From the IMG/VR virus record IMGVR_UViG_3300020477_001008, positions 1 through 64,000 of that record: a DNA stretch of 64,000 nucleotides; one strand, written 5' to 3'. The position numbers and the translations under genes were made by a program. Positions 3,919 to 43,662 of this stretch are shown one piece after another; the stretch's first letter is position 1, and every line of letters begins with the position of its first letter. A model generated the notes under the pieces. The model saw only the letters and a list, made by a program, of their open reading frames with translations, had not been told where the DNA came from and made no database searches.

Positions 3919-4653
3919 TTAAGCTTTAATGAGAAATTTTCTTATGATCCAAGCTGGTAGATCTAGCTCGTACCAACGTTCTTTATTGTCCCAGCTATAG
4001 GGCTTTGCGTGGTGTGTATTGTGTAATCCACTACCTAGGGTAATAAGGTTCACAAATAAGTTGTTCGTGCTTTTATCCGGCGTATTAAACAATCTATAGC
4101 CCCATTTATGACATATACTATTAACAGCACCAGCACTATGGAATGTTACTACAGCAGGTATTGAAATTAAAAATACAGCTATACGCCAATCAATTAAAGC
4201 TAGTATAATGTAACTTGAAAACAATATTTTTAAGTAGTTTTGATGTACAAATTTAATAAAAGGATCTCGTATTAAATCAGCAACATATTTTCTTTCAACA
4301 CTAAATGGTTTCCAAAATGTAGTCCACACTCTCCATAATGATTGATCACCGTGTGGGTCTCCTTCAGCATCAGGTACTTGGTGATGTTTTCTATGTATAC
4401 CACACCATAATACAGGACTACCAAAACAATTAAAAATACTCATTGCAATTAAGAACTTTCTTCTTAATGGTCCTGTTTTGAAACTGTTATGAGCTAGATA
4501 TCTATGTAAAGCAATTTCGCCACCTACTTTACCAAACATAATCCAACCAACAAGTGATAATGCTAACCAACTAAGATCAGCATACACTAATCCTGTTACT
4601 AACATTATGTGATTGAATAATAATATTAATTTTAACTTATATTCGTAGCTCAT
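3919..4653 (-). CDS. Membrane fatty-acid desaturase (delta-9 type)
   Basis: Three His boxes HRYLAH, HRKHH, HNTHH plus TM segments; start moved to MSYEY (4653). Confidence 0.9.
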   Translation of the reverse strand: MSYEYKLKLILLFNHIMLVTGLVYADLSWLALSLVGWIMFGKVGGEIALHRYLAHNSFKTGPLRRKFLIAMSIFNCFGSPVLWCGIHRKHHQVPDAEGDPHGDQSLWRVWTTFWKPFSVERKYVADLIRDPFIKFVHQNYLKILFSSYIILALIDWRIAVFLISIPAVVTFHSAGAVNSICHKWGYRLFNTPDKSTNNLFVNLITLGSGLHNTHHAKPYSWDNKERWYELDLPAWIIRKFLIKA

Positions 4654-5302
4654 TTTTGTATACCTTATTTGTAGCATATTTATTTGTACTAGCTTCAATA
4701 AGCTTCTGGTGTGCTGATTCTACTACTTTACCTGCTATAAATCCTACAATACGATCGTCATCAATTCCTTCTTTAACATCAACGCCGTGTGGCTGTGTAC
4801 AATTATTAATTAAAAATGCATCTGTATCTTCTGGTATATTACAAAAATGTTTAGGTTGTTTACTCATATCTTTGCTGTAATCATATTCATTACACATATA
4901 CAAAGTATCTCGTGAACCAGTTACAATAAATCTATATCCAATTGGCTCATTAGACATTTGATGATCTAACATCTCTTGAGTAATTGTCATATGATGTTTG
5001 TATGGTGCTTCGGTTTTATTTCCATCAACGTGAGGTGCAACGTTTCCAGTTGACCTAGCTAGTCTTACATAAAATTTATGTTCAAAAGGAAAGTATGTAT
5101 CTATCCATTCTAATAGCTCAGGATATTTTTGTTTTGCAAAATCGTTCCAAGGTTTCATATCACCTAATGGTTGACTAAAATCTTTTGTTCCTAATAGTGT
5201 TTCTTCTTTCCACCATACGTATTTTTCTGCACCAACAAAGTTATCAATAATCTTTTGTTTGTTAGGTATCGGTGGTATATCTAAGGGTGTGAATACTAGC
5301 AT
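4637..5302 (-). CDS. Putative 2OG-Fe(II) oxygenase/cupin-fold hydroxylase
   Basis: PHVD...PHGV (HxD...H triad). Confidence 0.55.
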   Translation of the reverse strand: MLVFTPLDIPPIPNKQKIIDNFVGAEKYVWWKEETLLGTKDFSQPLGDMKPWNDFAKQKYPELLEWIDTYFPFEHKFYVRLARSTGNVAPHVDGNKTEAPYKHHMTITQEMLDHQMSNEPIGYRFIVTGSRDTLYMCNEYDYSKDMSKQPKHFCNIPEDTDAFLINNCTQPHGVDVKEGIDDDRIVGFIAGKVVESAHQKLIEASTNKYATNKVYKNELRI

Positions 5303-8066: not shown

Positions 8067-8402
8067 ATGGATTGGTCAAACTTATTACTCGCAGTTGGAT
8101 TGGTCTACGTGGCTTACGAGGCAGGTAGATGGGCTCAAAGAGAAGATTTTAAAAGAGATGCTGAAATTCACGTAATGATAATGAAAGCATTTGAAAAAGC
8201 ACAACAACAGAACCATTATCAAAGTATTGTGGACCATAATGAAGAGATGGAAAAAGCAAAAGAAGATTATGAAAAGGGTAATAAGGAACTGTGGGACGAA
8301 ATTGAACAAGATAGAGCTAAATGGGAAGCAGAAGAATTAGCCAATCAAATTGAAAAAACACTAGAAGACGACGATAAAAAAGATGACGATAGAACCAATT
8401 AA
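8067..8402 (+). CDS. Hypothetical protein, N-terminal TM plus coiled coil
   Basis: ORF downstream of promoter. Confidence 0.65.
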   Translation: MDWSNLLLAVGLVYVAYEAGRWAQREDFKRDAEIHVMIMKAFEKAQQQNHYQSIVDHNEEMEKAKEDYEKGNKELWDEIEQDRAKWEAEELANQIEKTLEDDDKKDDDRTN

Positions 8403-8703
8403 AGAGAAACTAGACGAAAAGATTAAACGATTAAACTCATCAAGGGTAGTGAAGAAAGTGACACCTAAGGGCGATTTATCTTGGTATGTGAAATGGATAT
8501 CAGTATTTCTTATACTGTTCGCCACAGTGGCTAGAAGTGTAGGTAGTTTGCCACAATACGATATGTGGTTTGGATTGTTTGGTACATTAGGTTGGGCTTG
8601 GGTTGGATATCTATGGCACGACAGAGCATTATTGGTTTTAAATTCTATTTTGGTTACATTATTAATAATAGGACTTGCAAATTTCTATTTTGGAGTGATA
8701 TAG
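8383..8703 (+). CDS. Small multi-pass membrane protein (DUF6552-like)
   Basis: WYVKW...WHDRALLVLN; three TM segments. Confidence 0.6.
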   Translation: MTIEPIKEKLDEKIKRLNSSRVVKKVTPKGDLSWYVKWISVFLILFATVARSVGSLPQYDMWFGLFGTLGWAWVGYLWHDRALLVLNSILVTLLIIGLANFYFGVI

Positions 8704-10812: not shown

Positions 10813-10820
10813 ATGTAAAA

Positions 10821-10868
10821 CGTTCATCTGGTATAACAGACGGAAGTAAGCACTAGCTGAAGGAACGC
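10821..10868 (+). ncRNA. Glutamine riboswitch (glnA / Downstream-peptide class)
   Basis: P1 CGTTC/GAACG, P2 TCTG/CAGA, junction CGGAAGTA, P3 AGC/GCT, GAA E-loop; 25 nt upstream of an ORF. Confidence 0.85.
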
Positions 10869-10893
10869 ACTTAACTGTAAAAAGGAGAGTGTT

Positions 10894-12868: not shown

Positions 12869-12894
12869 CTTTTATGTGCGTCAGCATAACACAC

Positions 12895-12922
12895 TTGCGT
12901 TTTTTAGCTTTGCTGGTATACT
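12895..12922 (+). promoter_or_regulatory. Promoter of the TC/CC-free operon (atypical -35)
   Basis: TTGCGT-N16-TATACT with TG. Confidence 0.65.
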
Positions 12923-12942
12923 AATAACAAAAAGGAGCAGTT

Positions 12943-13344
12943 ATGATATTATATACAAAACAATTTAGTAATGCAGTTAGACAAGTTATAAAGAAGCATA
13001 GAGCAAAAGTGCATACGAGATACACATTTGGCACGAGTGGGAGTTGCAGTATGTTTACTAGCGAAGGCAAAAGAAAGATTAGCTTTAACTGTATAGGAAC
13101 TAGAAAACAATTTAACTTAATAAGAAAAGATTTAGTTAAGTTGTTTGCAGGAACTTGGCAACAAAACTTTATGAAGTACAAATGGAACACGGACGGTTGG
13201 CACGATAAAAGAATGTTTAGGATAGAGGGAACTTGTTTGTTTGAGGACAAAACAAAGGAAGAGTTTGCAAAAATAATGAAACAAAGAACACACAACATAT
13301 TGTGGGGCAAGTTGGCAGGTGATACTACAGCTTGTGGAAATTAG
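12943..13344 (+). CDS. Basic, proline-free immediate-early protein
   Basis: SD AAGGAG; no Pro; Ser coded only by AGY. Confidence 0.8.
   Translation: MILYTKQFSNAVRQVIKKHRAKVHTRYTFGTSGSCSMFTSEGKRKISFNCIGTRKQFNLIRKDLVKLFAGTWQQNFMKYKWNTDGWHDKRMFRIEGTCLFEDKTKEEFAKIMKQRTHNILWGKLAGDTTACGN
13292..13335. promoter_or_regulatory. Tandem NrdR-box-like pair (32-bp spacing)
   Basis: acACAACATATTGTgg (13292) and ACTACAGCTTGT (13324), upstream of the -35 at 13349. Confidence 0.6.
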
Positions 13345-13348
13345 GGGG

Positions 13349-13376
13349 TTGACAAGTAGCAATACTATGTTAAATT
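13349..13376 (+). promoter_or_regulatory. Early promoter
   Basis: TTGACA-N16-TAAATT with TG. Confidence 0.75.
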
Positions 13377-13382
13377 AATATT

Positions 13383-13505
13383 ATGGTTAGCAAGTTAATA
13401 AAATTAATTACAAGTTATTACGCAAGTTATTATGCAAGTATTATTTTAATATTTGTAATACTAGCAATAATAGGTGCGTTGCTAACAGCTTGTACACTAA
13501 TATAG
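13383..13505 (+). CDS. Membrane microprotein, paralog A (MVSKLIKLITSYYASYYASIILIFVILAIIGALLTACTLI)
   Basis: Probably leaderless; aligns ungapped with 16123 and 23940 ORFs. Confidence 0.65.
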   Translation: MVSKLIKLITSYYASYYASIILIFVILAIIGALLTACTLI

Positions 13506-13515
13506 AGAGGACTAT

Positions 13516-14139
13516 ATGCAAAAGCAAAAGTATACAAAAGAAGAGATAGAAGCAGGCGTTAAGTTTTTACAAAACGCAAATGTAAACTTTGACTATGACA
13601 AAGACGATATGCAAATTAACTTTAGTATAGACGTTGGTTGCAGAATATGGACGGACGGTAGTAGCATATGGAGTAGGGGAGTTGTTAAAGGAGTTAAAGT
13701 TAGTAGCTTGAGTTTAACAGCAACACACAGCAAAGATATGTACGACAAAAAGGATTGGGCAAGTTTAAAGGACGAGGACTTGTACTGGAGTGGTGGACTT
13801 ACGGGTTATGCTTTTTACGATGGTAGTGGCAAAGACGGAACGTGGTACGATGGCGTTGACGACGAAAGTGCATTAATTAATAGGAACACTAGTAAACATA
13901 GCGACGGCTTAATTTACACGGACGACGGCTTTGTTAAAAATTTAATAAAGTACTTAAGAGACGAGTGTAGCTTTGATACTAGCTTTACAGACTTAACAAA
14001 GTTTTTGGACTTTAGCTATAGCGAACAAGGGATGCAGGATATGGAAACTGTAAACTTTGACGTGGAAATGGACGGGGACTTTTGGATTAAGTGTAATGAC
14101 GAGCTAGTTAAGTTTTTACATAACAAAAAAGTAGCTTAA
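13516..14139 (+). CDS. Acidic, proline-free immediate-early protein (207 aa, ends -VA)
   Basis: SD GAGAGG; no Pro. Confidence 0.85.
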   Translation: MQKQKYTKEEIEAGVKFLQNANVNFDYDKDDMQINFSIDVGCRIWTDGSSIWSRGVVKGVKVSSLSLTATHSKDMYDKKDWASLKDEDLYWSGGLTGYAFYDGSGKDGTWYDGVDDESALINRNTSKHSDGLIYTDDGFVKNLIKYLRDECSFDTSFTDLTKFLDFSYSEQGMQDMETVNFDVEMDGDFWIKCNDELVKFLHNKKVA

Positions 14140-14348
14140 TGAGTACACGTTACAGATACGACAAGGCAACGGACAATTACGTTGAGGACGAATGGCAAGG
14201 TACTATACTAGAACAATGCGAAGCACTTGTACTAGCATTAAAGGAAGAAAGTGCTACAGAAGACAATGTAGCACGAAAGGAAGAATTGGAAATGCTAGTA
14301 GGGGAAATAGAATATAGAATAGGAGCAGGAGGAAACTATTTAATTTAA
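14139..14348 (+). CDS. Small acidic proline-free protein
   Basis: TAATG coupling. Confidence 0.7.
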   Translation: MSTRYRYDKATDNYVEDEWQGTILEQCEALVLALKEESATEDNVARKEELEMLVGEIEYRIGAGGNYLI

Positions 14349-14354
14349 TATGAT

Positions 14355-14397
14355 ACTAGTTGTAGTGTTAGCTTTAATAGTTGGCACTACATATAGT
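14355..14397. promoter_or_regulatory. Tandem NrdR-box-like pair (31-bp spacing)
   Basis: ACTAGTTGTAGT (14355) and ACTACATATAGT (14386), upstream of the -35 at 14410. Confidence 0.6.
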
Positions 14398-14470
14398 GAA
14401 TTTAAGCGGTTGACAAATAATAGATGTGTGTTAATTTAAAACAATAAACCAAACGAGAGGTAAAAACAAA

Positions 14471-14761
14471 ATGGTAAAACTAGCAAAAGAATCAATCATA
14501 GACAGTATATTAAAAATTACTGACACTAATGAATTGAGAGAAATCTCAAATGCTTTACACCAACATAGAACTTATATGAATGCTCAAGCAACAAGAAATT
14601 TTGTTGTAGGAGATAAAGTAGAGTTCGAAGGCAGAAGAGGTAGAACTGTACAAGGTGTAGTTAAGAGAGTTAAAATCAAAAACATTATAGTTGAAGAAAC
14701 TAATTCACCGTTTGGTGGAAGATGGAATGTTTCTGCTTCATTACTAAAGAAAGTAGCATAA
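14471..14761 (+). CDS. Early protein with SH3/KOW-like C-terminal domain
   Basis: VGDKVEF..GVVKRV..WNVSASLL; SD GAGAGG. Confidence 0.7.
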   Translation: MVKLAKESIIDSILKITDTNELREISNALHQHRTYMNAQATRNFVVGDKVEFEGRRGRTVQGVVKRVKIKNIIVEETNSPFGGRWNVSASLLKKVA

Positions 14762-14955
14762 TGCCAAAAGGGATTTTAACTAACAAGCAAGTAGACAAAT
14801 TAATAGAACTTGGGCCGGACATAATCGCCGGCCTAGAGTGCAATTTAAATGGCTCAGGATTACCTTGTAGAACTGATAGATTATATGCGGTTGACAAAAT
14901 GATTGCTTATGTTAAACTACACGGATACAAAGTAATAGACAAGGATAAAAAATGA
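14761..14955 (+). CDS. Hypothetical early protein (start MPKGIL)
   Basis: TAATG coupling. Confidence 0.55.
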   Translation: MPKGILTNKQVDKLIELGPDIIAGLECNLNGSGLPCRTDRLYAVDKMIAYVKLHGYKVIDKDKK

Positions 14956-15188
14956 GAGACTTGACTGAACAGCAAAAGGCTTTACTAGACTTACACAAAC
15001 ACATTGGGCGAGCAGAACAGCTTCCTAACAATGTGTGGGAGGAGTTAGTAGAACTAAATGATACAGAAGTTTTGTATCAAAATGTCAATTGTTATTTAGG
15101 AGACAATTACGACAGTGATGCTCCAGTTTATAATTGGAGTAAGAATCAATTAAACTTTAACTTTACAGAGGAGGATGCAAATGCCTAA
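14952..15188 (+). CDS. Hypothetical early protein
   Basis: ATGA overlap; SD AAGGA. Confidence 0.65.
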   Translation: MRDLTEQQKALLDLHKHIGRAEQLPNNVWEELVELNDTEVLYQNVNCYLGDNYDSDAPVYNWSKNQLNFNFTEEDANA

Positions 15189-15399
15189 ACCAAAAAAGCA
15201 AAAGTACGAGTATGAACCATTACCGGAAGATTACATCGACTTTGATGAAGACGGTACTTTACTAGATGAAGAGTCTAGTGATGTATTAGATCAAGATGTA
15301 GAAAGTCTTGATGAACTACAAGAAGACGAAGAGTATAAAGAAGAAGATGGCTACGGCGGAGGCGTCGAAGGCATTTACAATTGGGACGAATGGAATTAA
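15181..15399 (+). CDS. Small acidic early protein
   Basis: SD GAGGAGG. Confidence 0.65.
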   Translation: MPKPKKQKYEYEPLPEDYIDFDEDGTLLDEESSDVLDQDVESLDELQEDEEYKEEDGYGGGVEGIYNWDEWN

Positions 15400-15464
15400 C
15401 AGGTTGACAAAACGTTAACTTGTGTTACATTTAAATTATATTAACTTTTACAGAGAGAGAAAAT

Positions 15465-15893
15465 ATGTCTACAAGATCAAGAATAGCAGTACAGCAACCA
15501 GACGGTAGCTGGGATTCAGTTTATCATCATTACGACGGATATCCTGAAGGAGTAGGTGTTTGCCTAAAGCAACACATTCCAACTTACGACAAAGCAGTTA
15601 AACTAGTAGCAGGTGGCGACATCAGTTACATAGATTGGGACACAGCAGTTGTAAAATATTATGCAAAGCGAAGTAGCTGGGACGATCCTAGAGGCGGTAG
15701 CGACGAAGCTTGGGAAGATGTGGCACCCATTAACAGTAAAACTTTTGCAGATTTAATTGACGTAACTAACGGTAGTAACGGATGTTATCTATACGTATAC
15801 TACTTTCAAACAAACGGTGTGCGTTGTTACAATCCCGATACAAGGGAAGAAGTGCGTATACCAAAATCGAGGAAAGAAGAAGAGGTAGCTTAA
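15465..15893 (+). CDS. Phage early protein of MSTRSxI...YxHxDGYP type
   Basis: MSTRSRIAV, YHHYDGYPEGVG; own promoter. Confidence 0.8.
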   Translation: MSTRSRIAVQQPDGSWDSVYHHYDGYPEGVGVCLKQHIPTYDKAVKLVAGGDISYIDWDTAVVKYYAKRSSWDDPRGGSDEAWEDVAPINSKTFADLIDVTNGSNGCYLYVYYFQTNGVRCYNPDTREEVRIPKSRKEEEVA

Positions 15894-16122
15894 TGTTTAC
15901 AACTTATATCTTTTTAGTGAAGTTAAGTTACTTAGGTCCTGTAGCTTTAATAATATAGAGCTACAGTACTACACGTACAAACAGTATAGCTATCAGATAG
16001 TATCTATAAGCTTAGAAACAACTGTTTGTACACAGTACAATTGTAACAGTATTGCTGAATGCATAATTGTACACAGTATAGTTGTAGGTCGTGGTTGACA
16101 GAATTGAAAAGGATGCTATACT

Positions 16123-16278
16123 ATGAGCAACAAAATTATTGGAGATAACGGAGAAATACAAGAAGTACCTTTAATCAAAAAAGGAATAACATTATTTCTT
16201 TGGTATCTCGTAGGTAGATACGGAGGTGTATTTTTAATATATTTCCTACTAGCTATAATAGGAGGCCTTGTGTCCTAG
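16123..16278 (+). CDS. Membrane microprotein, paralog B (51 aa)
   Basis: ...LIKKGITLFLWYLVGRYGGVFLIYFLLAIIGGLVS. Confidence 0.55.
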   Translation: MSNKIIGDNGEIQEVPLIKKGITLFLWYLVGRYGGVFLIYFLLAIIGGLVS

Positions 16279-16573
16279 TAGCTATTACAGAATTCGTATC
16301 AGACGAAGTCTATATCGGTTTTGATGGAACTTCGTAGTCTTTGTTGTGATACAGAATGTAGTGGGGTTCTTCCCGGTGCGGGTGTTATTACCACTTAAAA
16401 TCCAAATAACAACGATGCGAGTCATTTCAGGGATAGAGACTCTTGCTAAATGAAATCCTTAGGGGTTTAGATTCATCACTAAACCCCACTAAACACTCCA
16501 TAAAATATAGAAAAAGTTGGTTGACAATTACCCGAAATATGCTATATTAGTTTATATAACAGAGGAGTTGAAA

Positions 16574-17131
16574 ATGCCAAATTGGTGCAATAACAATATA
16601 ACAATAAGAGCCCCTAAAAAGAAACTAGATAAGATAGTTAAAGCGGCTAAAAACGGCGAGTTGCTAAATCATTTTTTACCAATGCCTAAAGTATTAGACG
16701 GCACAACAGCCGATGGTTCTAAAGACAAAGCAATGATAAAGAAGACAGGCTACTCAGACTGGTATAGTTGGAGAGTTGATAATTGGGGAACTAAATGGGA
16801 CATAGATATCTATGAAGGTTCTATTAGTAGAGTAGATGACGAAACGGTGCAGTTTGGTTTTGACTCTGCTTGGGCTCCACCCATTGATGCCTACAAGGCA
16901 GTTCAAGATAAACATCAAGACATTTCAATCACGGCTTACTATTACGAACCAGGAATGGACTTTGCTGGAGAGTATGCAGACGGTGTGATAAGTGAAGTTA
17001 ATGTGTCAGATGAAAAGGATTCTTACTTTGAAGATACCGCACTAGGTAAAGAGTTAGATGCTTACTACGGTATATTAGAATCTAGAGCTGAATGGGAAGC
17101 ACAAAGAAATGCGGAGGTTCATAGTGCCTGA
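16574..17131 (+). CDS. DUF1281/YubB-like ferredoxin-fold protein
   Basis: MPNWCNN, WYSWRVDNWGTKWD, FDSAWAPP, YYEPG; SD GAGGAG. Confidence 0.8.
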   Translation: MPNWCNNNITIRAPKKKLDKIVKAAKNGELLNHFLPMPKVLDGTTADGSKDKAMIKKTGYSDWYSWRVDNWGTKWDIDIYEGSISRVDDETVQFGFDSAWAPPIDAYKAVQDKHQDISITAYYYEPGMDFAGEYADGVISEVNVSDEKDSYFEDTALGKELDAYYGILESRAEWEAQRNAEVHSA

Positions 17132-17492
17132 TAATCTACCAACTGATAAAAAAGATTGTAGAGAACAAGAAGAAGTGATCGTTGATAAGGACGGTCACTT
17201 TTTAAGTCACTATGTTTTAGCAGAAAGATTACTACAAGTTGAGTATGCTCAAATTAGAGATGAGATACGCCACGAAGCAACAAGTGATACTTTAACATAT
17301 ATCCTTGAAGGTGGCTTTAGAGGTTTTCACAAATTTACTAAACAGCAACAAAGAGATGAATGGCTTGATGGTGCAGAAGAGAAATGGTTTCACTTGTACG
17401 AAACAGGAGAACTACCTTGGGAACCATATGAAGAAGATCCTATTGCTATTAGAGACCACGCAAAGCGAAAGGAGAACAATGCCACTATTTAA
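17124..17492 (+). CDS. Hypothetical early protein
   Basis: GTG start after GGAGG. Confidence 0.6.
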   Translation: MPDNLPTDKKDCREQEEVIVDKDGHFLSHYVLAERLLQVEYAQIRDEIRHEATSDTLTYILEGGFRGFHKFTKQQQRDEWLDGAEEKWFHLYETGELPWEPYEEDPIAIRDHAKRKENNATI

Positions 17493-17670
17493 ATTATTCG
17501 CAGATGTAGACTCAGTTGTTGAAGAAGCAGAACATCTTGAACAAATATTCAAAGATGGTATCGAAGCAGAAAACGATGATGAGGCTTATAAGATAGTTGA
17601 GAAGAAAGTAAAAGAGTTAAACTTTGGTGGACCTTACTACACTTTAAGTGATCAATGGGAGGACGACTAA
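17479..17670 (+). CDS. Hypothetical early protein (start MPLFKL)
   Basis: SD AGGAG. Confidence 0.6.
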   Translation: MPLFKLFADVDSVVEEAEHLEQIFKDGIEAENDDEAYKIVEKKVKELNFGGPYYTLSDQWEDD

Positions 17671-18218
17671 TGGAATTTTTACCTAGAGAAGAAGACAACA
17701 GATTAGATGATAGAACAGCAAGGTTCCACGCAAGAGTAATGAAAGAAGACCTTGCAACATTACCTTATGTTCCTACAACAGCAAACAGAGACATCAACAT
17801 AGCAAGAGCTCAAAACTATGTGACTTGGGACTATGATAAAGATATGTGGTGTTCGGTAGATCATTTAATGATGAACTTTTATATTAAAGCAACAACAGAT
17901 CAATCAAGAGAAGTATTAGAAGATATGATTAATAGAGATGTTGTTAGATTGATTAAAGGTCCTAGATATTATCAACAAGCAAAAGTATATTCTTTTATTG
18001 ATATGGATTATCCAGAAGATGAATCAATATATGATTTAGTCAAGAAGCCTAAGAAAGATAGAAAGGCACACAGCATTACTGGCGACGAAGGAGAGATTAC
18101 TTACTTTGTCACACTACACATTCAGGAATGTAATAACTTAGACCTTAGAGTTTATGATGAAGAAGGTCGTGGAGATTATTTTGACTTACACGGAACTAAC
18201 CTAGAGGAGGTAGCATAA
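17670..18218 (+). CDS. Hypothetical early protein (ends -VA)
   Basis: TAATG coupling, SD GGAGG. Confidence 0.7.
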   Translation: MEFLPREEDNRLDDRTARFHARVMKEDLATLPYVPTTANRDINIARAQNYVTWDYDKDMWCSVDHLMMNFYIKATTDQSREVLEDMINRDVVRLIKGPRYYQQAKVYSFIDMDYPEDESIYDLVKKPKKDRKAHSITGDEGEITYFVTLHIQECNNLDLRVYDEEGRGDYFDLHGTNLEEVA

Positions 18219-18466
18219 TGGCTTGGAGCCAAGAAGAAGAACACGAACATCTTAAATCACCTTACACGAAATATAGTATAGGTTTAGAATATACGGTATG
18301 GGTTGATGTAGATGCCAAAGATGAAAGCGAAGCAATAGATAAGGCCTGCAACGCAAATTATAGTTTGAATGTTTATATAGGTAAGAACCATCCTAGAGTA
18401 GCAGTTAGTACACACGCAGAACTAAATGAATATTCAGACCCAAAAGTATGGTGCGAAAATGACTAA
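18218..18466 (+). CDS. Hypothetical early protein (VxAxxxxEA motif)
   Basis: SD GAGGAGG. Confidence 0.65.
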   Translation: MAWSQEEEHEHLKSPYTKYSIGLEYTVWVDVDAKDESEAIDKACNANYSLNVYIGKNHPRVAVSTHAELNEYSDPKVWCEND

Positions 18467-18701
18467 AAAGAAATTAGATATGAAAGCAGTAAAGAAGGAG
18501 TTAGATAAGATGTTTGATGATTATGATTTAAGCAAAAAAGGTAGCGGAGCACCTAAAGGATCTAGATATATTGAAGTTGTAGTAGGTTTGCACATAGATG
18601 AAAACGCAGACCCCAGCGAGATCATTGAGAATGTTGATTATGATTTCAAGCACAAACACATAAAGGATATGTCGATACAAGATGTATTAACAGAGTTCTA
18701 G
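18459..18701 (+). CDS. Hypothetical early protein
   Basis: Overlaps upstream stop. Confidence 0.6.
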   Translation: MTKKKLDMKAVKKELDKMFDDYDLSKKGSGAPKGSRYIEVVVGLHIDENADPSEIIENVDYDFKHKHIKDMSIQDVLTEF

Positions 18702-18772
18702 TAAGGCACTAGATATAGTAGGTTGACAAATATTCAACTTATGTTAGTATTAAGAATAAGGAGAAGTTGCAA

Positions 18773-19156
18773 ATGACAAAAGAAATATATAACAAAGACA
18801 ATCCACACCAGGATATAGGTAAATCAAAATACAGAGTTAGAAGACATTACACTTGTTGGGTAGAATACGATGTAGTTGCTAATTCAAAAGAAGAAGCGGA
18901 AGATGCCGTTTTAGAACAAGGTGGCATTAACAAGATCGATTGGGAAGAAGGTTATCATAAAGATGAACCTGTAGAAGTTTATGCTAACGATTACAATTGG
19001 TCAGATTGTGATGATAGAGATTACGAAAAATACAGAGGACCATTAACAAACAAAGTTGCTGAATGTATTCCATACGAAGATAGTGATAGTATAGACTATC
19101 AAGATCCAGATTGGTCTACAGACGATTATGAATGGAAGAAAGAAGAAATAGCATAA
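18773..19156 (+). CDS. Hypothetical acidic early protein (VxAxSxEEA motif)
   Basis: Own promoter; SD AGGAG. Confidence 0.7.
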   Translation: MTKEIYNKDNPHQDIGKSKYRVRRHYTCWVEYDVVANSKEEAEDAVLEQGGINKIDWEEGYHKDEPVEVYANDYNWSDCDDRDYEKYRGPLTNKVAECIPYEDSDSIDYQDPDWSTDDYEWKKEEIA

Positions 19157-19281
19157 TGGCAAAACTTACTAAAAAAGAAAAGAAAGAATTATTAAAAGAG
19201 TTCTTACATTTCTGGCCACTATCAATAGTTGTCCCGGCTATGTTATTATTAATATTGTTTGGACCTTATATTGTAGGTTGA
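19156..19281 (+). CDS. Membrane microprotein (41 aa, MAKLTKKEKKELLKEFLHFWPLSIVVPAMLLLILFGPYIVG)
   Basis: TAATG coupling; hand translation. Confidence 0.55.
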   Translation: MAKLTKKEKKELLKEFLHFWPLSIVVPAMLLLILFGPYIVG

Positions 19282-19326
19282 CAGATCTAAGAACTATGTT
19301 AATATAAAGAATAACAAAAAGAAGAG

Positions 19327-20370
19327 GTGCAAATGCAAAAAAACGCAATCAAGATAAGAACAGGTATATTTGATAATCAACCTGTGCAAGATATCACTTT
19401 TAATTTAATAAAAGACTTCGAGCCTTATAAGACAGGCGGTGGCTTTTATTTGGTGGATGGGAAAACGGCAAGTGAAGGAGACTATCCTACTAGACCAATT
19501 AGAGTGAAAGTTAAAGATCCAGCTCACGCAGAGTACATAGCAGTAGAGCAACCTTTAACAAAAAAGAAAGTTGTTAAGAAGCCAACTGAAACTGATGAAC
19601 AAGCAATTGAAAGAATCAGAGAAAGGTTTGATATCTTAACTGAAATGGTAGAAGCAACACAAGAAGGAGTTGTCCGTGCAATGATAGTATCGGGACCTCC
19701 AGGTGTTGGTAAGTCATATGGTGTTGAAGCACAATTAAACAAGTCAGACATCTTTAATAAAATAGCAGACGAGAAGCCTAGGTTCGAAGTTGTTCGAGGG
19801 GCTATGTCCGCAATTGGTTTATACCAAAAACTATTCAAGTTCAGTAATGCAGGAAACATTCTTGTATTAGATGATTGTGATAGTATTTTATTTGATGATG
19901 TAGCACTTAACATCTTAAAGGCCGCACTAGACTCTAGTAAGAAAAGATATATCAGTTGGAATACTGAATCAAGAGTTCTTGCTAACGAAGGTGTTCCAGA
20001 TAGATTTGAATTTAGAGGATCAGTAATAATGATCACTAACATTAAATTTGATTATGTTAGATCTAAAAAATTACAAGATCACTTAAATGCAATTATGTCT
20101 AGATGTCACTACTTGGATCTTACAATGGATACAATTAGAGATAGAATGTTAAGATGTAAGCAGGTCCTTGCAGATGGAGAGATGTTAGCAGATTATATGT
20201 TCTCCAAAGAAAAGGAAAAAGAATTGATGGACTTTATGTGGGAATATAAAGAACATCTAAACGAGATTTCATTAAGGATGATCACTAAAATAGCCGACCT
20301 GGCAAAGATGTCAGATGATTGGAAGAAGTTAGCGAGAGTCACTTGTATGAAAAGGAGTTCCGCAGTATAG
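19327..20370 (+). CDS. AAA+ family ATPase
   Basis: Walker A GPPGVGKS, Walker B ILVLDD, ITN sensor-1, SR arginine finger. Confidence 0.9.
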   Translation: MQMQKNAIKIRTGIFDNQPVQDITFNLIKDFEPYKTGGGFYLVDGKTASEGDYPTRPIRVKVKDPAHAEYIAVEQPLTKKKVVKKPTETDEQAIERIRERFDILTEMVEATQEGVVRAMIVSGPPGVGKSYGVEAQLNKSDIFNKIADEKPRFEVVRGAMSAIGLYQKLFKFSNAGNILVLDDCDSILFDDVALNILKAALDSSKKRYISWNTESRVLANEGVPDRFEFRGSVIMITNIKFDYVRSKKLQDHLNAIMSRCHYLDLTMDTIRDRMLRCKQVLADGEMLADYMFSKEKEKELMDFMWEYKEHLNEISLRMITKIADLAKMSDDWKKLARVTCMKRSSAV

Positions 20371-20425
20371 CGGAATAGAGACTTAGGTTATTCACTTGCA
20401 ACCTCTCTTACCTAAGTCTTGACAC

Positions 20426-20453
20426 GGGGGTGGGCGTAAAAACCCACCCTTTT
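20426..20453 (+). terminator. Rho-independent terminator
   Basis: GGGTGGG/CCCACCC followed by TTTT. Confidence 0.75.
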
Positions 20454-20521
20454 ACTACGAATATAAGAGGTTGACGTATTTCAAATCCAATGTATATTAG
20501 TACTATAAAGGGAGGCAAACT

Positions 20522-20890
20522 ATGTCAAAAGAAGTTAAACAATTTACAACAGCAAAGATGAATCCAGCAGAAATCTTTGGTAATGCGTGTCTAAAGGCGA
20601 GATATGCTGTAGATGAATTTACAGCTAAACACGGTGAACCAATGTACTGTGGATTTGCTAACATTTCAATTCATCCTGCAAGAGGACCTTTTGTTTCTTG
20701 GTGCAAGAAGATGAATATTGGTAGCAATGGTTATGGTGGCGGTTGGAGAATTTCATATTATGATTTTATGAATGATCACCAATACAAACATACACAATCA
20801 ATGGATATAAAAGAAGTGGCTATGAACGCCGTTTCTTCGTACTTTGAAAGCTTAGGAATTACTGCCTATGCAGAAAGTAGGGCAGATTAA
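20522..20890 (+). CDS. Phage early protein (CGFA motif)
   Basis: Own promoter, SD GGAGG. Confidence 0.75.
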   Translation: MSKEVKQFTTAKMNPAEIFGNACLKARYAVDEFTAKHGEPMYCGFANISIHPARGPFVSWCKKMNIGSNGYGGGWRISYYDFMNDHQYKHTQSMDIKEVAMNAVSSYFESLGITAYAESRAD

Positions 20891-20970
20891 TTAGTAAAAC
20901 TGGCATAAAATAGGGGGTTGACATAATCCCCTTTTATGTTATTATGATTATATAAAGAGAGAGAGGTTAT

Positions 20971-21183
20971 ATGAAAAAAATAAGTAGAAACTTTTTTAAC
21001 ACATTAGCAACAATATTGATTGCAGTTGGTATTATTATGATTGCAGGTAGCGGTAATGATTGTGATGGTAAGTGTGTTGAGACAGCAAACACAATTAGCG
21101 AAATGTTAATGTATGCAGGAATAGGTTTAAGTTTTTTTATTACTGGTGCATTAGTTTTAATTAGTAATAGAGACGAGGCGTAA
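20971..21183 (+). CDS. Two-TM membrane protein
   Basis: Two hydrophobic helices flanking a CDGKC loop. Confidence 0.7.
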   Translation: MKKISRNFFNTLATILIAVGIIMIAGSGNDCDGKCVETANTISEMLMYAGIGLSFFITGALVLISNRDEA

Positions 21184-21833
21184 TGAAGAAACTTGTAATA
21201 TACTTTTTTTTAATTTATTTGTTCGCTTGGAAGTTAGTTGGTTATGCAGAAGCAAAAGACAAATACGATGAAGTTATTTTTACAGAACAAGCACAATTAA
21301 TTTTTGATACTACTTTACACGATTGGAAAGAGCACTATACAGATATCAATGAAGATCAAGTTAGATGTATGGCACAGAACATTTACTTTGAAGCAAGAGC
21401 AGAAAGTATGTTAGGTAAGACAGCAGTTGGCTTTGTGACTATTAATAGAGTTAATGATGATAGATGGCCTAACACCATTTGTAAAGTTGTTCATCAAGGA
21501 CCGCACAGAGAAAGTTGGAAAACTAAACAAGATGAGACACTAGCAGATGAAGATAGAATTTATTATCCTAGAAAGCACAGATGTCAATTCAGTTGGTATT
21601 GTGATGGTAAGAAAGATATTATTTGGGCAAACTATTCAGACGGTAGAACAATAGAACAGAATGCTAGAGCTTGGTTTGATAGTATAGTGATTGCACTAGC
21701 AGTTATGACTGGGCACGTCAACGATAACACAGACGGCAGTTTATACTATTACAATCATCACCTAGTATATCCTACTTGGGCTGATACACAAGAACTAAAA
21801 GTGATTATAGGTAATCACACATTTATGAGGTAA
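21183..21833 (+). CDS. SleB-like cell wall hydrolase (Hydrolase_2)
   Basis: NIYFEARAE, NRV...WPNTICKVV, CQFSWYCDG, IGNHTF; signal peptide. Confidence 0.9.
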   Translation: MKKLVIYFFLIYLFAWKLVGYAEAKDKYDEVIFTEQAQLIFDTTLHDWKEHYTDINEDQVRCMAQNIYFEARAESMLGKTAVGFVTINRVNDDRWPNTICKVVHQGPHRESWKTKQDETLADEDRIYYPRKHRCQFSWYCDGKKDIIWANYSDGRTIEQNARAWFDSIVIALAVMTGHVNDNTDGSLYYYNHHLVYPTWADTQELKVIIGNHTFMR

Positions 21834-22004
21834 TATGGATAGCGATTTATTTCAATATATACAGAAACTACAAGCAGAAAACAAGGCTTTAAAACTACAG
21901 GTTGCAGAAGAAACCAAAGAAAAGTACCAATTATATAACAGAATTAAGCACTTGACAGAATCCAAAAATAGTGTACATTTAAACAATAAAGAGAGGTAAA
22001 CTAT

Positions 22005-22985
22005 ATGGAGAAATTTACAACAAGACTTACAATAGCAATAATGGCGCTGATGGTTATGTTATCAATTTCAAATCAGGCTAAAGCAGGTTGGTATGATACC
22101 GCTAGTAAAGATCACAAGAAGTGGGCTAAAGAATTTTATCAAGTAAAAGACAAAGACAAATATACTAATGTTCACGAAACATTATTATCAGATGATATCA
22201 AACTAAAGTTTGGTTATATTAAATTTCCTGGAATCGAAATGAAGAGTTCTTTAAAGTCTGGTAAGAATAACTTTGCAGAAGTAATTGGTGCACAAGAGAT
22301 TGCTTACAATGGAGAAACATTTCATTCTATTATAGTTGACCATAGTAAATGCTACAAAGGTGAATGGGGTAATGACTGTGGTTCAAGTGGTGGTAGCAGT
22401 AGATCAGAATTAAAAGCAAAAGGTTATACATTTAACGAAGGCACAGAGAAATGGATTAACTATGCGGTACTGCCTGCAAACAATATTTTATTTGATGGTA
22501 GAAGCAGAACATTCACAGTTGGACAATGTCATCCACAAGATGATGACGGTGAAAGAATTACTTGGATGATCAAGTTCAGAGACAATACATTAGAATTAAA
22601 TCATAACTTCAAAAGCACACAACAAAATGATGGTACTTGGAAAAGAGGTTATGAAGTGTTTAGAACATTAAAGACATTTTCAGCTAATGAAAACAATGGT
22701 AGCTTTGATTGGACTAACATCAGAATCAACTTTAAGAATAGCAAGAAGGCAGATGGTAAATTACACATTTGGATAGATGGCAAACTGGCTTATGAATACA
22801 CAGGTCCTACTAACTGGAACGATGGTAAAAGAGACAAATGTCAGTTTAAATTTGGTTTATACACTAATGGTAATTTGACATCACCCTACAAAGAGCATAT
22901 GGAGAATATGACAGTATTTGTAGACTATATGGCTATTGCTAAAACAGAAGCAAAATTAGAGAAATTGCTTAAGAAAGACAAGTAA
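22005..22985 (+). CDS. Secreted polysaccharide lyase-like (concanavalin/jelly-roll) protein
   Basis: Signal peptide; RSEL, GQCH, GKLHIWIDGK, FKFGLY. Confidence 0.7.
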   Translation: MEKFTTRLTIAIMALMVMLSISNQAKAGWYDTASKDHKKWAKEFYQVKDKDKYTNVHETLLSDDIKLKFGYIKFPGIEMKSSLKSGKNNFAEVIGAQEIAYNGETFHSIIVDHSKCYKGEWGNDCGSSGGSSRSELKAKGYTFNEGTEKWINYAVLPANNILFDGRSRTFTVGQCHPQDDDGERITWMIKFRDNTLELNHNFKSTQQNDGTWKRGYEVFRTLKTFSANENNGSFDWTNIRINFKNSKKADGKLHIWIDGKLAYEYTGPTNWNDGKRDKCQFKFGLYTNGNLTSPYKEHMENMTVFVDYMAIAKTEAKLEKLLKKDK

Positions 22986-23053
22986 AATAGGGGATTGACA
23001 AAATGGGTAAATGTGTTAATATTAATAATATGCAAACAACAACAGAGGAGAAA

Positions 23054-23563
23054 ATGAATATAAAAGACTATATTTCAATTTCGATTATTGCTTTGGCTTT
23101 TATGCTTATCACTGGGATAGCAAAAGCTGAAGAGTTCAAAACAATATCAGGTTCTGTTGTAGGCGTTGAGGCTATATACGAAACCAAAAACATCCACGAG
23201 CCGCACGAACATTGTACGATACAGGAAGTTCCTATATACGGACAAGACCAAGGTGCGAATATCGTAGGTGCTATTATCGGTGGCTACATAGGTAGCAAGA
23301 TCGGTGGTGGTAAAGGTAATGATATAGCAATAGGTACAGGTGCAGTTATTGGTTCACAAATAGGCAACAAAAAGATAGTTGGCTACAAACAGGTTAGAAC
23401 TTGTGAAACAACCTACACTACCAGCTTACAAAAGGTTTTGAACTATTACATAATATCGTGGAAATCAAACGATGGTATGTTTAGCGGTAAAGCGAAAAGC
23501 ACAAAGCATTGGACTACTGGAGATCACATCAAAGTTAGACTGATAGCTCAACCAGTATTATAG
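23054..23563 (+). CDS. Glycine-zipper 2TM (YcfJ-like) exported protein
   Basis: GAIIGGYIGSKIGGGKG..AIGTGAVIGSQIG; SD GAGGAG. Confidence 0.85.
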   Translation: MNIKDYISISIIALAFMLITGIAKAEEFKTISGSVVGVEAIYETKNIHEPHEHCTIQEVPIYGQDQGANIVGAIIGGYIGSKIGGGKGNDIAIGTGAVIGSQIGNKKIVGYKQVRTCETTYTTSLQKVLNYYIISWKSNDGMFSGKAKSTKHWTTGDHIKVRLIAQPVL

Positions 23564-23584
23564 AACAACCATAACTTGCAACCA

Positions 23585-23613
23585 AGGGCGGGCCTTAAAA
23601 TCCGCCCTTTTTT
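23585..23613 (+). terminator. Rho-independent terminator
   Basis: AAGGGCGG/CCGCCCTT followed by T-run. Confidence 0.8.
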
Positions 23614-23652
23614 AATGGTTGACGGATAGCCAATTTCTGCTATTATAACACT

Positions 23653-23943
23653 ATGAACAGAGGAGCAATTATGCAAAAAGAAATGTTAAAAGGCCAAGGT
23701 GCTAATCCACTACCATTTGATTGTGTAGTATTGGATAGACCTGAAACGATCAAGAACCCATATAGCGGCGAGTCAGTAGAACTACAACCAGATGCAGTAG
23801 CAGTATATGATTGTATCAAAGGTGCTGAACTATTAGCACAAGGTATAGACGATGGCGGACATCCGTTATGGTGCAAGGTTAGAGAAGGCCTAGATTGGTT
23901 TAGACAATACTATGCCAAAGAGTATATGGTATTGTTAGATTGA
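23653..23943 (+). CDS. Hypothetical early protein (start may be 23671)
   Basis: Own promoter; SD GAGGAG. Confidence 0.7.
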   Translation: MNRGAIMQKEMLKGQGANPLPFDCVVLDRPETIKNPYSGESVELQPDAVAVYDCIKGAELLAQGIDDGGHPLWCKVREGLDWFRQYYAKEYMVLLD

Positions 23944-24056
23944 TTAAAAAGATCATTAAACTGGTAGCCAGTTACTATGCAGGATACATAGGTGGCTGGT
24001 TGCTAGTGTTTACCCTACTAGCGATTGCAGGTGCAATAATCTGTATCACTTGCTAG
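23940..24056 (+). CDS. Membrane microprotein, paralog C (MIKKIIKLVASYYAGYIGGWLLVFTLLAIAGAIICITC)
   Basis: TTGA overlap; aligns with paralog A. Confidence 0.6.
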   Translation: MIKKIIKLVASYYAGYIGGWLLVFTLLAIAGAIICITC

Positions 24057-24129
24057 ACTTTTCAAAATAAAAAAAAGAAAAAAATATTTTTCGACCTCGA
24101 CCGTGTATATGCGTCTGGGGTCGGAAACC

Positions 24130-24507
24130 TGAGAATGGGGCTAACGATTGCTAATAAAAAAAGTGGGCTATTATATAGGCGGCGAGATAAAAAGGGCTAT
24201 ATGCAATAGAGGTAAAAGCGAATGCTTTTTAAACTAAAGCACTTGCTTTGGTTTAGACTAGGAAAACAAATGTGGTTGAGGAAACTTGGTTGCTAAAAAA
24301 ATTACGCAGTAAAATTTTATGGGCTAGTGTATAGGCGACGGACTTATATGCATAGCTGATATGGTTAGGTATGCAAAACTAACATAACGGACTTATATGC
24401 AGTTAAAACGTACTTTAATACATTAGAAGCACTTTGATACTACTGAATATGGTTATGACGCTTAAACAGAAGGATATGCACGTTTAAAGGCGGTATTTAC
24501 AACGTAC
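24130..24507 (+). other. Second TC/CC-free tract (apparently non-coding)
   Basis: All Cs (about 48 by hand count) preceded by a purine; repeats (CGGACT)TATATGCA. Confidence 0.85.
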
Positions 24508-24946
24508 CTACCATTAGATCCTGTGGATAGTAAAAAGAACCCTAGAGCATAAGAATACTGTGGATCTCTCGGGCTAGTCAACACTTGAGCGAAGCGAATG
24601 CTTATAAGGGTTATTCAATATAACCACTGTGTCTACTGTATACCACTAGTTGTGAAAAGTTCAGCCCACCCAATTCCAAGGATCACTATAACGTTCCAAT
24701 TCACTTTTATATGGCTTTGCACTCAAACGTAGTACTATTACAAAACCAATAATAAGGATATAAAGCGTCATATAAAGTATATATGATTAACCAGGGTTAG
24801 AACACCTTTAGCTACTGTCAGAACGGTGGATTGTTCCTAGAGCTGAAAGCGAAAGGCTGACCGTACTATTAAGTGGTAGTTAACTAGCTTGAAAAATCGT
24901 TCGTACACATAAAAATTAATACTAATACATCTCTATTAAAATATAA

Positions 24947-25115
24947 CACATACACATATTAGTAAAAATATATCGCGGCATACACATACAGCAAATAATA
25001 AAAAACACATACGCCAAAATTTTTAAACGCATACACACCTCTAAAATAAAAAATCGCATACAAACCTATGTAAAAATACACATACACATACATAAAAAAA
25101 TAGGACGCATACACA
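24947..25115 (+). repeat. Iteron-like (C/G)CATAC repeats separated by A-tracts
   Basis: CATAC at 24949, 24979/85, 25008, 25030, 25057, 25081/87, 25108. Confidence 0.75.
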
Positions 25116-25166
25116 ATTGGCTGTATAATAGCTTGACTTTTAAGCAATATATGTTATATTACTACT

Positions 25167-43659: not shown

Positions 43660-43662
43660 ATT

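Follow-up and report, generated by a model that had tools for sequence, protein, structure and literature searches.

In bacteriophage T4 the immediate-early transcription units are read by host RNAP from strong sigma-70 promoters without protein synthesis, and the boundary between immediate-early and delayed-early genes is Rho-dependent. In T7, both in the leading region ahead of gene 0.3/Ocr and in the strand-biased EcoP15I sites, the sequence expressed before the counter-measure exists is kept free of the recognition element of the enemy. The phage and cellular Rho antagonists (P4 Psu, Rof/YaeO) and the antiterminators lambda N and Q have the function of freeing phage transcription from Rho (PMC12360218). 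The closest cultured relative of the phage considered here, Pseudomonas phage PA5oct (Arenbergviridae; the tail sheath proteins are 40% identical), depends entirely on host RNAP, and its early transcription comes from sigma-70-like promoters (PMC7318152). The locus described here lies in the IMG/VR record IMGVR_UViG_3300020477_001008, a 242.6-kb record of a marine jumbo phage of which positions 1 to 64,000 constitute the window analyzed. It includes four small genes at the head of the rightward early cluster that are real and conserved, and that lack proline only because every TC and CC dinucleotide (YC) has been removed from 1.6 kb of the sense strand.

The four ORFs are located on the + strand and have the sizes and properties given in an earlier note made from the sequence alone, which also stated that none of them contains proline; this observation was confirmed. 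They occupy coordinates 12943-13344 (133 amino acids, pI 10.1), 13383-13505 (40 amino acids, with a hydrophobic C-terminal helix), 13516-14139 (207 amino acids, pI 4.56, with 38 Asp+Glu, 6 Trp and 16 Gly) and 14139-14348 (69 amino acids, pI 4.26). Together they include no proline in 449 residues, while the other early proteins have 3.3% Pro and about 15 would be expected. The underlying feature is stronger than had been noticed. The + strand from 12883 to 14448, a tract of 1566 nt, has no CC and no TC, which leaves a gap of 1568 bases, while the next longest gaps in the whole record are 379 and 293 bases. At the sense-strand YC density of the neighboring early genes (0.047 per nt) about 73 YC would be expected, and the chance of such a gap is about e^-73. 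The absence is at the nucleic acid level: there are no Y|C codon junctions where 14.6 are expected, no YC in 208 nt of non-coding sequence, and no YC where 41.7 are expected (minimum 23 in 2000 simulations) when the same proteins are back-translated with the synonymous usage of the other early genes. The same strand carries 203 GA+GG, and the complementary strand is therefore full of YC. The RC dinucleotides are over-represented (AC 1.68x, GC 1.54x), as is TT (1.36x), G (23.4%) far exceeds C (11.9%), and GAC is preferred over GAT 27:10 as compared to 72:175 elsewhere, although the amino acid composition is otherwise ordinary. Coding on the + strand is supported by the existence of conserved protein families and by confident AlphaFold models.

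The tract spans two transcription units and the promoter of the third. Promoter P1 (12895-12922, + strand) consists of TTGCGT, a 16-nt spacer and a TG-extended TATACT, and is followed by an AAAGGAG ribosome-binding site ahead of the ATG at 12943; its position is conserved in four of the related marine metagenome loci, designated L024, L026, L001 and L023. Promoter P2 (13349-13376, +) consists of TTGACA, a 16-nt spacer and a TG-extended TAAATT. A CACTACATATAG motif followed by promoter P3 (TTGACA, 16-nt spacer, TAATTT) is found at 14385-14437 (+), and the first YC appears at 14449, about +5 of this transcription unit. The purge thus begins at a sigma-70-like promoter, within about 45 nt of the P1 start site, and ends at the start of the third unit. 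We could not show a constraint at the DNA level reaching upstream of the start site, because 4 of 13 other early promoters also have no YC between −50 and −1. Designation of these genes as immediate-early is inferred from the sigma-70-type promoters with strong ribosome-binding sites and from their position; the time of expression was not measured, as the only RNA data are fragments of the region in four metatranscriptomes, which give neither transcript ends nor timing and in which DNA carry-over cannot be excluded. Beyond the tract the YC density recovers gradually, from 0 to 0.034-0.041 and then to about 0.05 per nt.

The 133-amino acid basic protein is the universal core of the cassette. 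It has 56 invariant columns in the alignment of the family, and its model (pLDDT 77) shows a ferredoxin-like (alpha-beta-beta)x2 domain followed by a long C-terminal helix. The 207-amino acid acidic protein has a confident alpha/beta model (pLDDT 88, pTM 0.85) with no detectable structural relative. The 40-amino acid peptide, with a C-terminal transmembrane helix, is an accessory member: an orthologue (38 amino acids) is present in L023 and absent in L001. A 38-amino acid paralogue encoded at 23940-24056 (+) carries 6 YC, indicating that the peptide family is not intrinsically YC-free. The start of the 69-amino acid gene overlaps the stop of the 207-amino acid gene (TAATG). An orthologue is present in L023, but the gene is dispensable in at least one strain, as one metatranscriptome contig skips 14135-14340. 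Two other YC-free stretches were found on the + strand of the early cluster. One of 293 nt (20932-21222) starts inside a strong promoter (TTGACA at 20918) and encodes a 70-amino acid membrane protein without Pro, whose orthologue in L001 has 2 YC in 204 nt. The other, of 379 nt (24130-24506), has no ORF of 35 amino acids or more on the + strand and is a candidate untranslated early RNA; it has no Rfam match and no homolog among the loci fetched. A YC-free stretch at 85403-85632 corresponds to a Lys/Glu-rich coiled-coil coding segment and is probably a compositional effect.

The earlier note had proposed, as a way to probe its interpretation, asking whether homologs in other phages also lie in purged DNA and co-occur with modification genes. 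The first part came out positive. The purge recurs in all 24 related marine metagenome loci examined, and in all 24 the 133-amino acid orthologue has zero YC, with lineages down to 57% protein identity. Rare isolated YC are tolerated (1-3 per cassette in L001, L002, L025 and L026), and in relatives the purge ends at, or is interrupted only by, hairpins at unit ends. On the other hand, lack of proline is not a property of the proteins: the 207-amino acid orthologue in the L001 lineage has 3 Pro and 16 YC, and distant homologs carry Pro and YC. As for modification genes, profile searches of the record for TGT/DpdA, thymidylate synthase-like proteins, C5 and N4/N6 methyltransferases and CDA deaminases were all negative. 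PF01702, PF00145, PF01555 and PF00383 gave no match and PF00303 gave only an 18.9-bit sub-threshold match inside a coiled-coil ORF, with the caveat that the record is only about 55% complete.

No functional lead was obtained from the proteins themselves. Pfam and PHROG scans of the four proteins and their neighbors found nothing for the four, blastn and tblastn against 50,697 phage records found no match, and scans of IMG/VR with single proteins and with the alignment found no relatives. Fold searches against PDB (Foldseek), VIA-wide, AFDB clusters, BFVD and the ESM Atlas (by shape and by features) were equally uninformative. For the 207-amino acid model the best PDB match has Z 3.2, Foldseek E is above 0.2, and the only AFDB matches are uncharacterized proteins. 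The 133-amino acid model matches only generic ferredoxin-like domains. No recognizable glycosylase or hydrolase domain or fold, whether UDG-like, HhH-GPD, H2TH, ALK/HEAT or a metal-dependent hydrolase, and no homology or fold similarity to Psu, Rof, N or Q, was found in these searches. A complex prediction with E. coli Rho and the 207- and 133-amino acid proteins scored 0.00 with no answer, an outcome that counts neither for nor against binding, and the true host Rho is unknown.

The analysis establishes that the four genes form a conserved cassette at the head of the rightward early cluster, that the cassette has sigma-70-type promoters, that its whole transcribed sense strand has been purged of 5'-YC-3', and that the lack of proline and the exclusive use of AGY codons for serine are by-products of that purge. 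What follows is inferred. We consider that the cassette is a bootstrap operon that must be expressed by unmodified host RNA polymerase while a factor that reads YC on the sense strand or on the nascent RNA is still active, and that one or more of its products then make that factor irrelevant for the rest of the genome, which does contain YC. The best candidate for this role is the invariant basic 133-amino acid protein. The most likely reader is the termination factor Rho, a reading to which we assign a probability of about 0.38. Each of the primary RNA-binding clefts of Rho accepts only a 5'-YC dinucleotide (PMC12360218), so YC-free RNA offers Rho no loading site, and the transcript fulfils the sequence requirements of a rut-free RNA, with no YC and with G exceeding C. 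Such transcripts would be Rho-proof even before ribosomes or an antiterminator protect them, in the way T4 immediate-early RNA is made without protein synthesis. In this view the 133-amino acid protein would act as an antiterminator or Rho/RNAP-binding factor and the 207-amino acid, 69-amino acid and membrane peptide products would be accessory host-takeover factors.

This reading is supported by the strand specificity of the purge, its delimitation by transcription units, its action at the nucleic acid level, its maintenance across lineages and the gradual recovery of YC downstream, as well as by the high G and low C content and by the host RNAP dependence of PA5oct. The tolerance of isolated YC fits a reader needing several sites better than a one-hit agent, and the 379-nt stretch with no ORF, which would be prime Rho prey if transcribed, is also YC-free. 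The phage carries an alphaproteobacterial-type tmRNA (alpha_tmRNA, 153 bits), which points to a host class that normally has Rho. However, the host is unknown, its possession of Rho and the action of Rho on YC-restored transcripts were not examined, and a glutamine riboswitch found in the record is typical of cyanobacteria, which lack Rho. No protein evidence links any of the four products to Rho or RNAP. Furthermore, Rho needs several YC, so near-total removal is more stringent than avoiding a rut site would require, and translated mRNA is normally protected from Rho anyway. The enrichment of C after purines indicates that the pressure is context-specific rather than a general avoidance of C-rich RNA. 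The feature is not general to host-RNAP jumbo phages or to PA5oct-like phages, as the 45-kb early region of PA5oct has no such tract. The possibility that the tract specifies an unstructured RNA was rejected, since its folding energy per 150 nt (−25.8 kcal/mol) matches that of other early windows (−26.7, p = 0.31).

The main rival, less likely but possible, is that YC is read by an enzyme that damages nucleic acid at pyrimidine-C, either an endoribonuclease acting on mRNA or an ssDNA-specific nuclease or cytosine deaminase acting on the non-template strand exposed by heavy transcription. It could be a host defense or the phage's own host-shutoff weapon, to which the cassette would be immune because it has no target, and the cassette would encode the inhibitor or simply outlast the activity. 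The strand-specific, unit-delimited and conserved purge fits this model as well. Near-absolute removal of a single dinucleotide class with C kept in RC contexts is what a context-specific enzyme would select, and the graded recovery of YC fits an activity that is progressively neutralized. There are precedents for such specificity, as T4 endonuclease IV cuts ssDNA at 5'-T^C and APOBEC3-type deaminases prefer TC and CC. Against this model, no YC-specific RNase, nuclease or deaminase is known as an anti-phage system and a literature search found none, no CDA-type deaminase is encoded in the record, and the occasional YC in relatives argue against a one-hit lethal agent. If the host is a streamlined marine alphaproteobacterium it is likely to carry few defense systems. 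A bolder version, also less likely than the Rho reading but possible, is that the cassette is the counter-measure to an undescribed activity of this kind, a new host immunity or a new host-shutoff weapon, and that the 133-amino acid protein, the 207-amino acid protein (a new fold by its predicted structure), or both, would be its first known inhibitors. In that case dinucleotide-free bootstrap operons would be a general signature, searchable by computation, for finding such activities and their antidotes in uncultured phages.

A mutational footprint is improbable. In this model recurrent YC-specific C-to-U deamination of the displaced non-template strand in the most heavily transcribed units would have driven YC to extinction, with the proteins adapting to the lost codons. 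The enrichment of TT, the depletion of C only after pyrimidines and the grading of the depletion with distance from the first promoters are consistent with it, and once purged the region would carry no further mutational load. However, it needs the same unknown enzyme, the sharp boundaries at unit ends and the retention of YC exactly where hairpin arms need it look selected, and deamination does not explain the active enrichment of NAC codons.

The interpretation offered in the earlier note was only partly supported. It held that the products are needed before any GA/GG-containing template can be read, for example a glycosylase or hydrolase removing an adduct, an RNAP-binding factor, or an inhibitor of a YC-specific host defense. 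The genes do head the rightward early cluster behind sigma-70-like promoters, and the conservation of the purge fits products that must be made before a YC (template GA/GG) dependent problem is solved, and the RNAP adaptor and inhibitor options are viable but unproven. The specific model in which virion DNA carries an adduct on G in GA/GG contexts that blocks host RNAP on the template strand, to be removed or bypassed by the cassette proteins, is very unlikely. The template strand of the cassette has no GA or GG, and radical-SAM genes of unknown role are syntenic neighbors in relatives, but this radical-SAM cluster sits with SPASM domains, an M17 peptidase, RpiB and a desaturase rather than with nucleotide enzymes. 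To this are added the lack of TGT/DpdA, hydroxymethylase-type or methyltransferase genes in the 242 kb, although the record is only about 55% complete, the absence of any enzyme-like fold match for the two larger proteins, and the fact that neighboring early units use the same promoter type and do contain YC. The ready assembly of the DNA from many independent short-read metagenomes argues weakly against polymerase-blocking adducts. Finally, selection at the protein or translation level against proline or against certain codons or tRNAs, as well as chance or an assembly artefact, although compatible with the lack of Pro and with several unused codon families, are refuted by the codon junctions, the non-coding DNA, the otherwise ordinary composition, the e^-73 probability and the recurrence in 24 independently assembled loci.

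Complete, strand-specific removal of a dinucleotide class from whole transcription units is an unusually clean natural experiment, which has been kept for as long as these phages have diverged. In our interpretation it indicates that some factor reading pyrimidine-C on the sense strand or on RNA matters in the first moments of infection, and it marks the genes that deal with that factor. If the reader is Rho, these would be the first naturally Rho-proof coding sequences, with a simple design rule for Rho-insulated genes, and if it is an enzyme, a new layer of phage-host conflict is exposed. Literature searches for a described YC-free early region found nothing relevant. In either case the feature is trivial to scan for in metagenomes and offers a handle on early-gene function in uncultured jumbo phages, which here probably infect an abundant low-GC marine alphaproteobacterium.

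Compared with the systems mentioned above, the present phage shares with PA5oct the characteristics of a jumbo myovirus of about 33-35% GC, with dependence on host RNAP and many small early genes behind TTGAC/TATAAT promoters; PA5oct also has abundant early non-coding RNAs. However, PA5oct has no homologs of the four proteins, and the longest YC-free gap in its 45-kb early repeat is 187 nt. The Rho antagonists and antiterminators have the function proposed here for the core product of the cassette, without sequence or fold similarity to it. Residues 1-100 of the 133-amino acid protein superpose on PilO/GspM/GspL-type ferredoxin-like domains with Z 9.1-9.6 (Foldseek probability 1.0 but TM below 0.5). 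This is a very common small fold, designed proteins and ribosomal protein S6 score similarly, identity is 3-17%, and the protein is soluble, with no hydrophobic segment or membrane anchor and no type II secretion or type IV pilus gene context, so only the fold is shared, with no implication for function. As in T4, a myovirus that depends on host RNAP, there are promoter-proximal genes that must be made first and without phage help, and downstream early genes that are less protected, which appears here as a graded YC density. T4 is not known to achieve this by deleting a dinucleotide class, and the four proteins have no T4 homologs. With T7 the cassette shares the logic of target-site avoidance and the presence of an acidic early protein, but the 207-amino acid protein is only moderately acidic (38 acidic against 24 basic residues) and is predicted to be a compact alpha/beta fold with no match to the DNA mimics Ocr or ArdA. 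Here the avoided element is a pair of dinucleotides, on one strand only and over whole transcription units, and symmetric recognition of dsDNA is therefore excluded.

The window is the first 64 kb of a 242,646-bp single-contig virus record with 32% GC, which is linear and is estimated by CheckV to be about 55% complete. Portal, terminase and a 1011-aa tail sheath place it among jumbo myoviruses, and the nearest cultured relative is Pseudomonas phage PA5oct, whose sheath is 40% identical, while all close relatives are contigs from marine metagenomes. The four ORFs listed in an earlier note made from the sequence alone are present on the + strand: 12943-13344 (133 aa, pI 10.1), 13383-13505 (40 aa, with a hydrophobic C-terminal helix), 13516-14139 (207 aa, pI 4.56) and 14139-14348 (69 aa, pI 4.26), the start of the latter overlapping the preceding stop. 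None of them contains proline, although the other early proteins of this phage have 3.3% Pro and about 15 prolines would be expected in 449 residues. A metatranscriptome contig (run X15) joins position 14135 directly to 14340 and represents a strain variant that lacks the 69-aa gene.

The real feature is found in the nucleic acid. The + strand from 12883 to 14448 contains no CC and no TC (5'-YC), a gap of 1568 bases that compares with next-longest gaps of 379 and 293 bases in the whole record. At the sense-strand YC density of the neighbouring early genes (0.047 per nt) the probability of such a gap is about e^-73. The observation made in the note thus holds, and is stronger than was stated there. 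Three tests show that the absence is not a consequence of the proteins. First, 205 codons end in a pyrimidine and 32 begin with C, yet there is no Y|C junction where 14.6 are expected. Second, the 208 non-coding bases inside the tract also have none. Third, back-translation of the same four proteins with the synonymous usage of the other early genes gives 41.7 YC on average, and never fewer than 23 in 2000 trials. Apart from Pro the amino-acid composition is ordinary, and serine is as frequent as elsewhere but uses only AGY codons. The purge affects one strand only, as the same strand carries 116 GA and 87 GG and the complement is therefore rich in YC. On the other hand, C is not avoided in general. 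AC and GC are over-represented (1.68x and 1.54x), C is enriched wherever a purine precedes it, and codon preference flips inside the tract, GAC being preferred to GAT 27:10 in 12943-14348 whereas the other early genes (14471-27667) prefer GAT 175:72, with AAC and TAC showing the same shift. This could be a compensation for the lost YC, or a signature of very high expression. The lack of proline is therefore a forced by-product of having no CC.

The tract is delimited by transcription units. A sigma-70-like promoter, P1, sits 12 nt inside its left edge and consists of TTGCGT, a 16-nt spacer and a TG-extended TATACT at 12895-12922, followed by an AAAGGAG ribosome-binding site. A second promoter lies at 13349, and the third, at 14410, is still inside the tract, and the first YC appears at about +5 of that third unit. 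Thirteen further promoter-like sites between 11000 and 26000 (+) share the form GGTTGACA, a 16-nt spacer and TAnnnT, often with a TG extension, and look like a uniform early promoter class to which P1 is the exception, its -35 element (TTGCGT) being weaker and its -10 element stronger. The absence of YC in the 45 nt upstream of the P1 start site is not informative, because 4 of the 13 other promoters also have none there. Downstream of the tract the sense-strand YC density recovers stepwise, from 0.034-0.041 per nt at 14.4-15.4 kb to about 0.05. Two smaller YC-free units exist. One of them, at 20932-21222, starts within a strong promoter and encodes a 70-aa membrane protein. The other, at 24130-24506 (+), is 379 nt long, has no ORF of 35 aa or more on the + strand and contains internal repeats of the type GGGCTA..TATAGGCG.. 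and ACGGACTTATATGCA. It is a candidate abundant early non-coding RNA, like those reported for PA5oct, with no Rfam match and no homologue among the loci fetched for comparison. A further YC-free stretch of 232 nt, at record 85403-85632 (+), lies inside a 593-aa ORF in a Lys/Glu-rich coiled-coil segment, and is probably a compositional effect and not the same phenomenon.

The 133-aa protein has 24 homologues at 57-97% identity, and the 207-aa protein has 31 cluster representatives in 1.84 billion proteins. The note had proposed to ask whether homologues in other phages also lie in purged DNA, and this recurrence was found. We examined 24 marine metagenome loci (L001-L009 and L023-L037), and in every one the 133-aa orthologue has zero YC and lies in an uninterrupted YC-free span of 386-1836 nt or more, some of these spans being cut by contig ends, while the flanking DNA has 0.035-0.13 YC per nt. 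Locus L023 has the same gene order as the window, plus an extra upstream gene, inside an 1806-nt span. In relatives, YC reappears exactly at hairpins that close units: in L023 and L035 a 15-bp hairpin with a C-rich loop, and in L028 and L029 a CCCCTC arm that pairs with GGGAG. The hairpin of L023 (2850-2900) and L035 (2690-2740) is formed by two inverted copies of the motif CAC(A/T)ACATATAG exactly at the 3' end of the YC-free span. In the whole 242-kb record this motif occurs only around the cassette, at 11452, 12824 and 14385 (+), and it may be a terminator, a processing site or an operator. Rare isolated YC are tolerated, at 1-3 per cassette.

The constraint is less tightly tied to the other genes. 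The 207-aa orthologue in the lineage of locus L001 has 16 YC and 3 Pro, the distant homologues P0040 and P0041 have YC and P0041 has Pro, the 38-aa paralogue of the membrane peptide has 6 YC, and the 69-aa gene is missing altogether from the strain represented by run X15. The 133-aa gene is therefore the invariant core, and the purge belongs to the transcription unit rather than to the protein families. In the L001 lineage the other early genes (Hydrolase_2, polysaccharide-lyase-like, Gly-zipper and others) lie on the opposite strand and diverge from the cassette, while in the window (14.4-23 kb) they follow it on the same strand, and the cassette therefore behaves as a separate module.

No Pfam or PHROG family matches any of the four proteins, and cultured phages have no homologues. 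Structure prediction and fold comparison, which had been suggested in the note as a way to test its proposal of a glycosylase or hydrolase, gave nothing to suggest either activity. AlphaFold2 with the family alignments gives a confident model for the 207-aa protein (pLDDT 88, pTM 0.85), a compact alpha/beta fold whose best PDB match is Z 3.2, whose only AFDB matches are two uncharacterised proteins and whose ESM Atlas matches have TM 0.40 or below. The 133-aa model (pLDDT 77) is an (alpha-beta-beta)x2 ferredoxin-like domain followed by a long helix. It resembles PilO/GspM/GspL domains at Z 9.1-9.6, but so do designed proteins and ribosomal protein S6, and this is a shared common fold and not a function. 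A complex prediction of the two proteins with E. coli Rho returned no answer, which is not evidence either way.

Modification genes, with which the note had asked whether homologues co-occur, were also sought. The record has no TGT/DpdA, no thymidylate-synthase-type enzyme above threshold, no C5 or N4/N6 DNA methyltransferase and no CDA-type deaminase, although only about 55% of the genome is represented. At least six radical-SAM genes, two of them with SPASM domains, are present at 1541-2764, 29480-33117, 42127-47484 and neighbouring positions, together with an M17 leucyl aminopeptidase (43901-45439), RpiB (34069-34539) and a fatty-acid desaturase (3919-4698). The radical-SAM pair is syntenic in the related loci L001 and L007. 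The function of this cluster is unknown, and its genes give no sign of acting on DNA. Elsewhere, a single 4061-aa ORF running from window position 57689 to record position 69874 (-) carries a CBM_5_12 carbohydrate-binding module and is followed by an 838-aa protein with an E1_FCCH-like domain and by a Peptidase_G2 (intramolecular chaperone) protein. All of these are probably giant fibre or virion proteins.

The analysis demonstrates that the constraint is on one strand, that it is delimited by transcription units and that it has been maintained over deep divergence. It must therefore act on the mRNA, on the non-template strand or, equivalently, on GA/GG in the template. That the cassette must be expressed while a YC reader is active, and that its products then make that reader irrelevant, since the rest of the genome carries YC, are steps that we infer. 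The only well-characterised reader of 5'-YC dinucleotides in nascent bacterial RNA is the primary binding site of Rho (PMC12360218), and phages of this kind depend on host RNAP (PMC7318152). A YC-free transcript gives Rho nothing to hold. The graded YC recovery downstream, the YC-free stretch without ORFs, the tolerance of rare single YC and the presence of YC only in unit-end hairpins all fit a reader that needs several sites. Several points count against this reading, to which we assign a probability of about 0.38. The purge is more complete than rut avoidance needs, translation should protect coding RNA, and no protein evidence ties the products to Rho. The host is unknown as well. The phage encodes a permuted tmRNA at record 172221-172515 (+; 8221-8515 of the fetched stretch L015), whose best Rfam family is alpha_tmRNA (153 bits) and whose tag peptide is ADENLALAA, and the record also holds 10 tRNA genes, which together suggest a low-GC marine alphaproteobacterial host for a jumbo phage. 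The alphaproteobacterial-type tmRNA favours a Rho-bearing host. On the other hand, a full-length glutamine riboswitch aptamer (RF01739, 61 bits against a gathering score of 35) at 10819-10871 (+), just upstream of the early locus, belongs to a family typical of cyanobacteria and marine metagenomes, and cyanobacteria lack Rho.

Among the alternatives, the one that survives best, although it is still doubtful, is a YC-specific RNase, ssDNA nuclease or deaminase, which could be either a host defence or a phage weapon. A purely mutational footprint of such an enzyme is unlikely. The model of the note, in which an adduct on the template must be dealt with before GA/GG-containing DNA can be read, is slightly less likely still, being weakened by the lack of modification genes, by the lack of enzyme-like folds and by the ease with which this DNA is sequenced in many metagenomes. 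An explanation by unstructured mRNA is rejected, since RNA folding energy in the tract is ordinary. The interpretation given in the note is thus supported in part: its reasoning that these products are needed first and the predicted recurrence in purged DNA hold, but the lack of proline that it emphasised is a by-product and the idea of a de-modifier has no support.

There is a substantial chance that the tract marks an unknown YC-directed activity and its inhibitors. We know of no described case of whole transcription units cleared of a dinucleotide class, and searches of the literature found none. The 45-kb early terminal repeat of PA5oct has no comparable tract, its longest gap being 187 nt. 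In T4, Rho separates immediate-early from delayed-early expression. We regard the tract as a new form of target avoidance in first-expressed phage genes, in which whole transcription units are cleared of a dinucleotide class.
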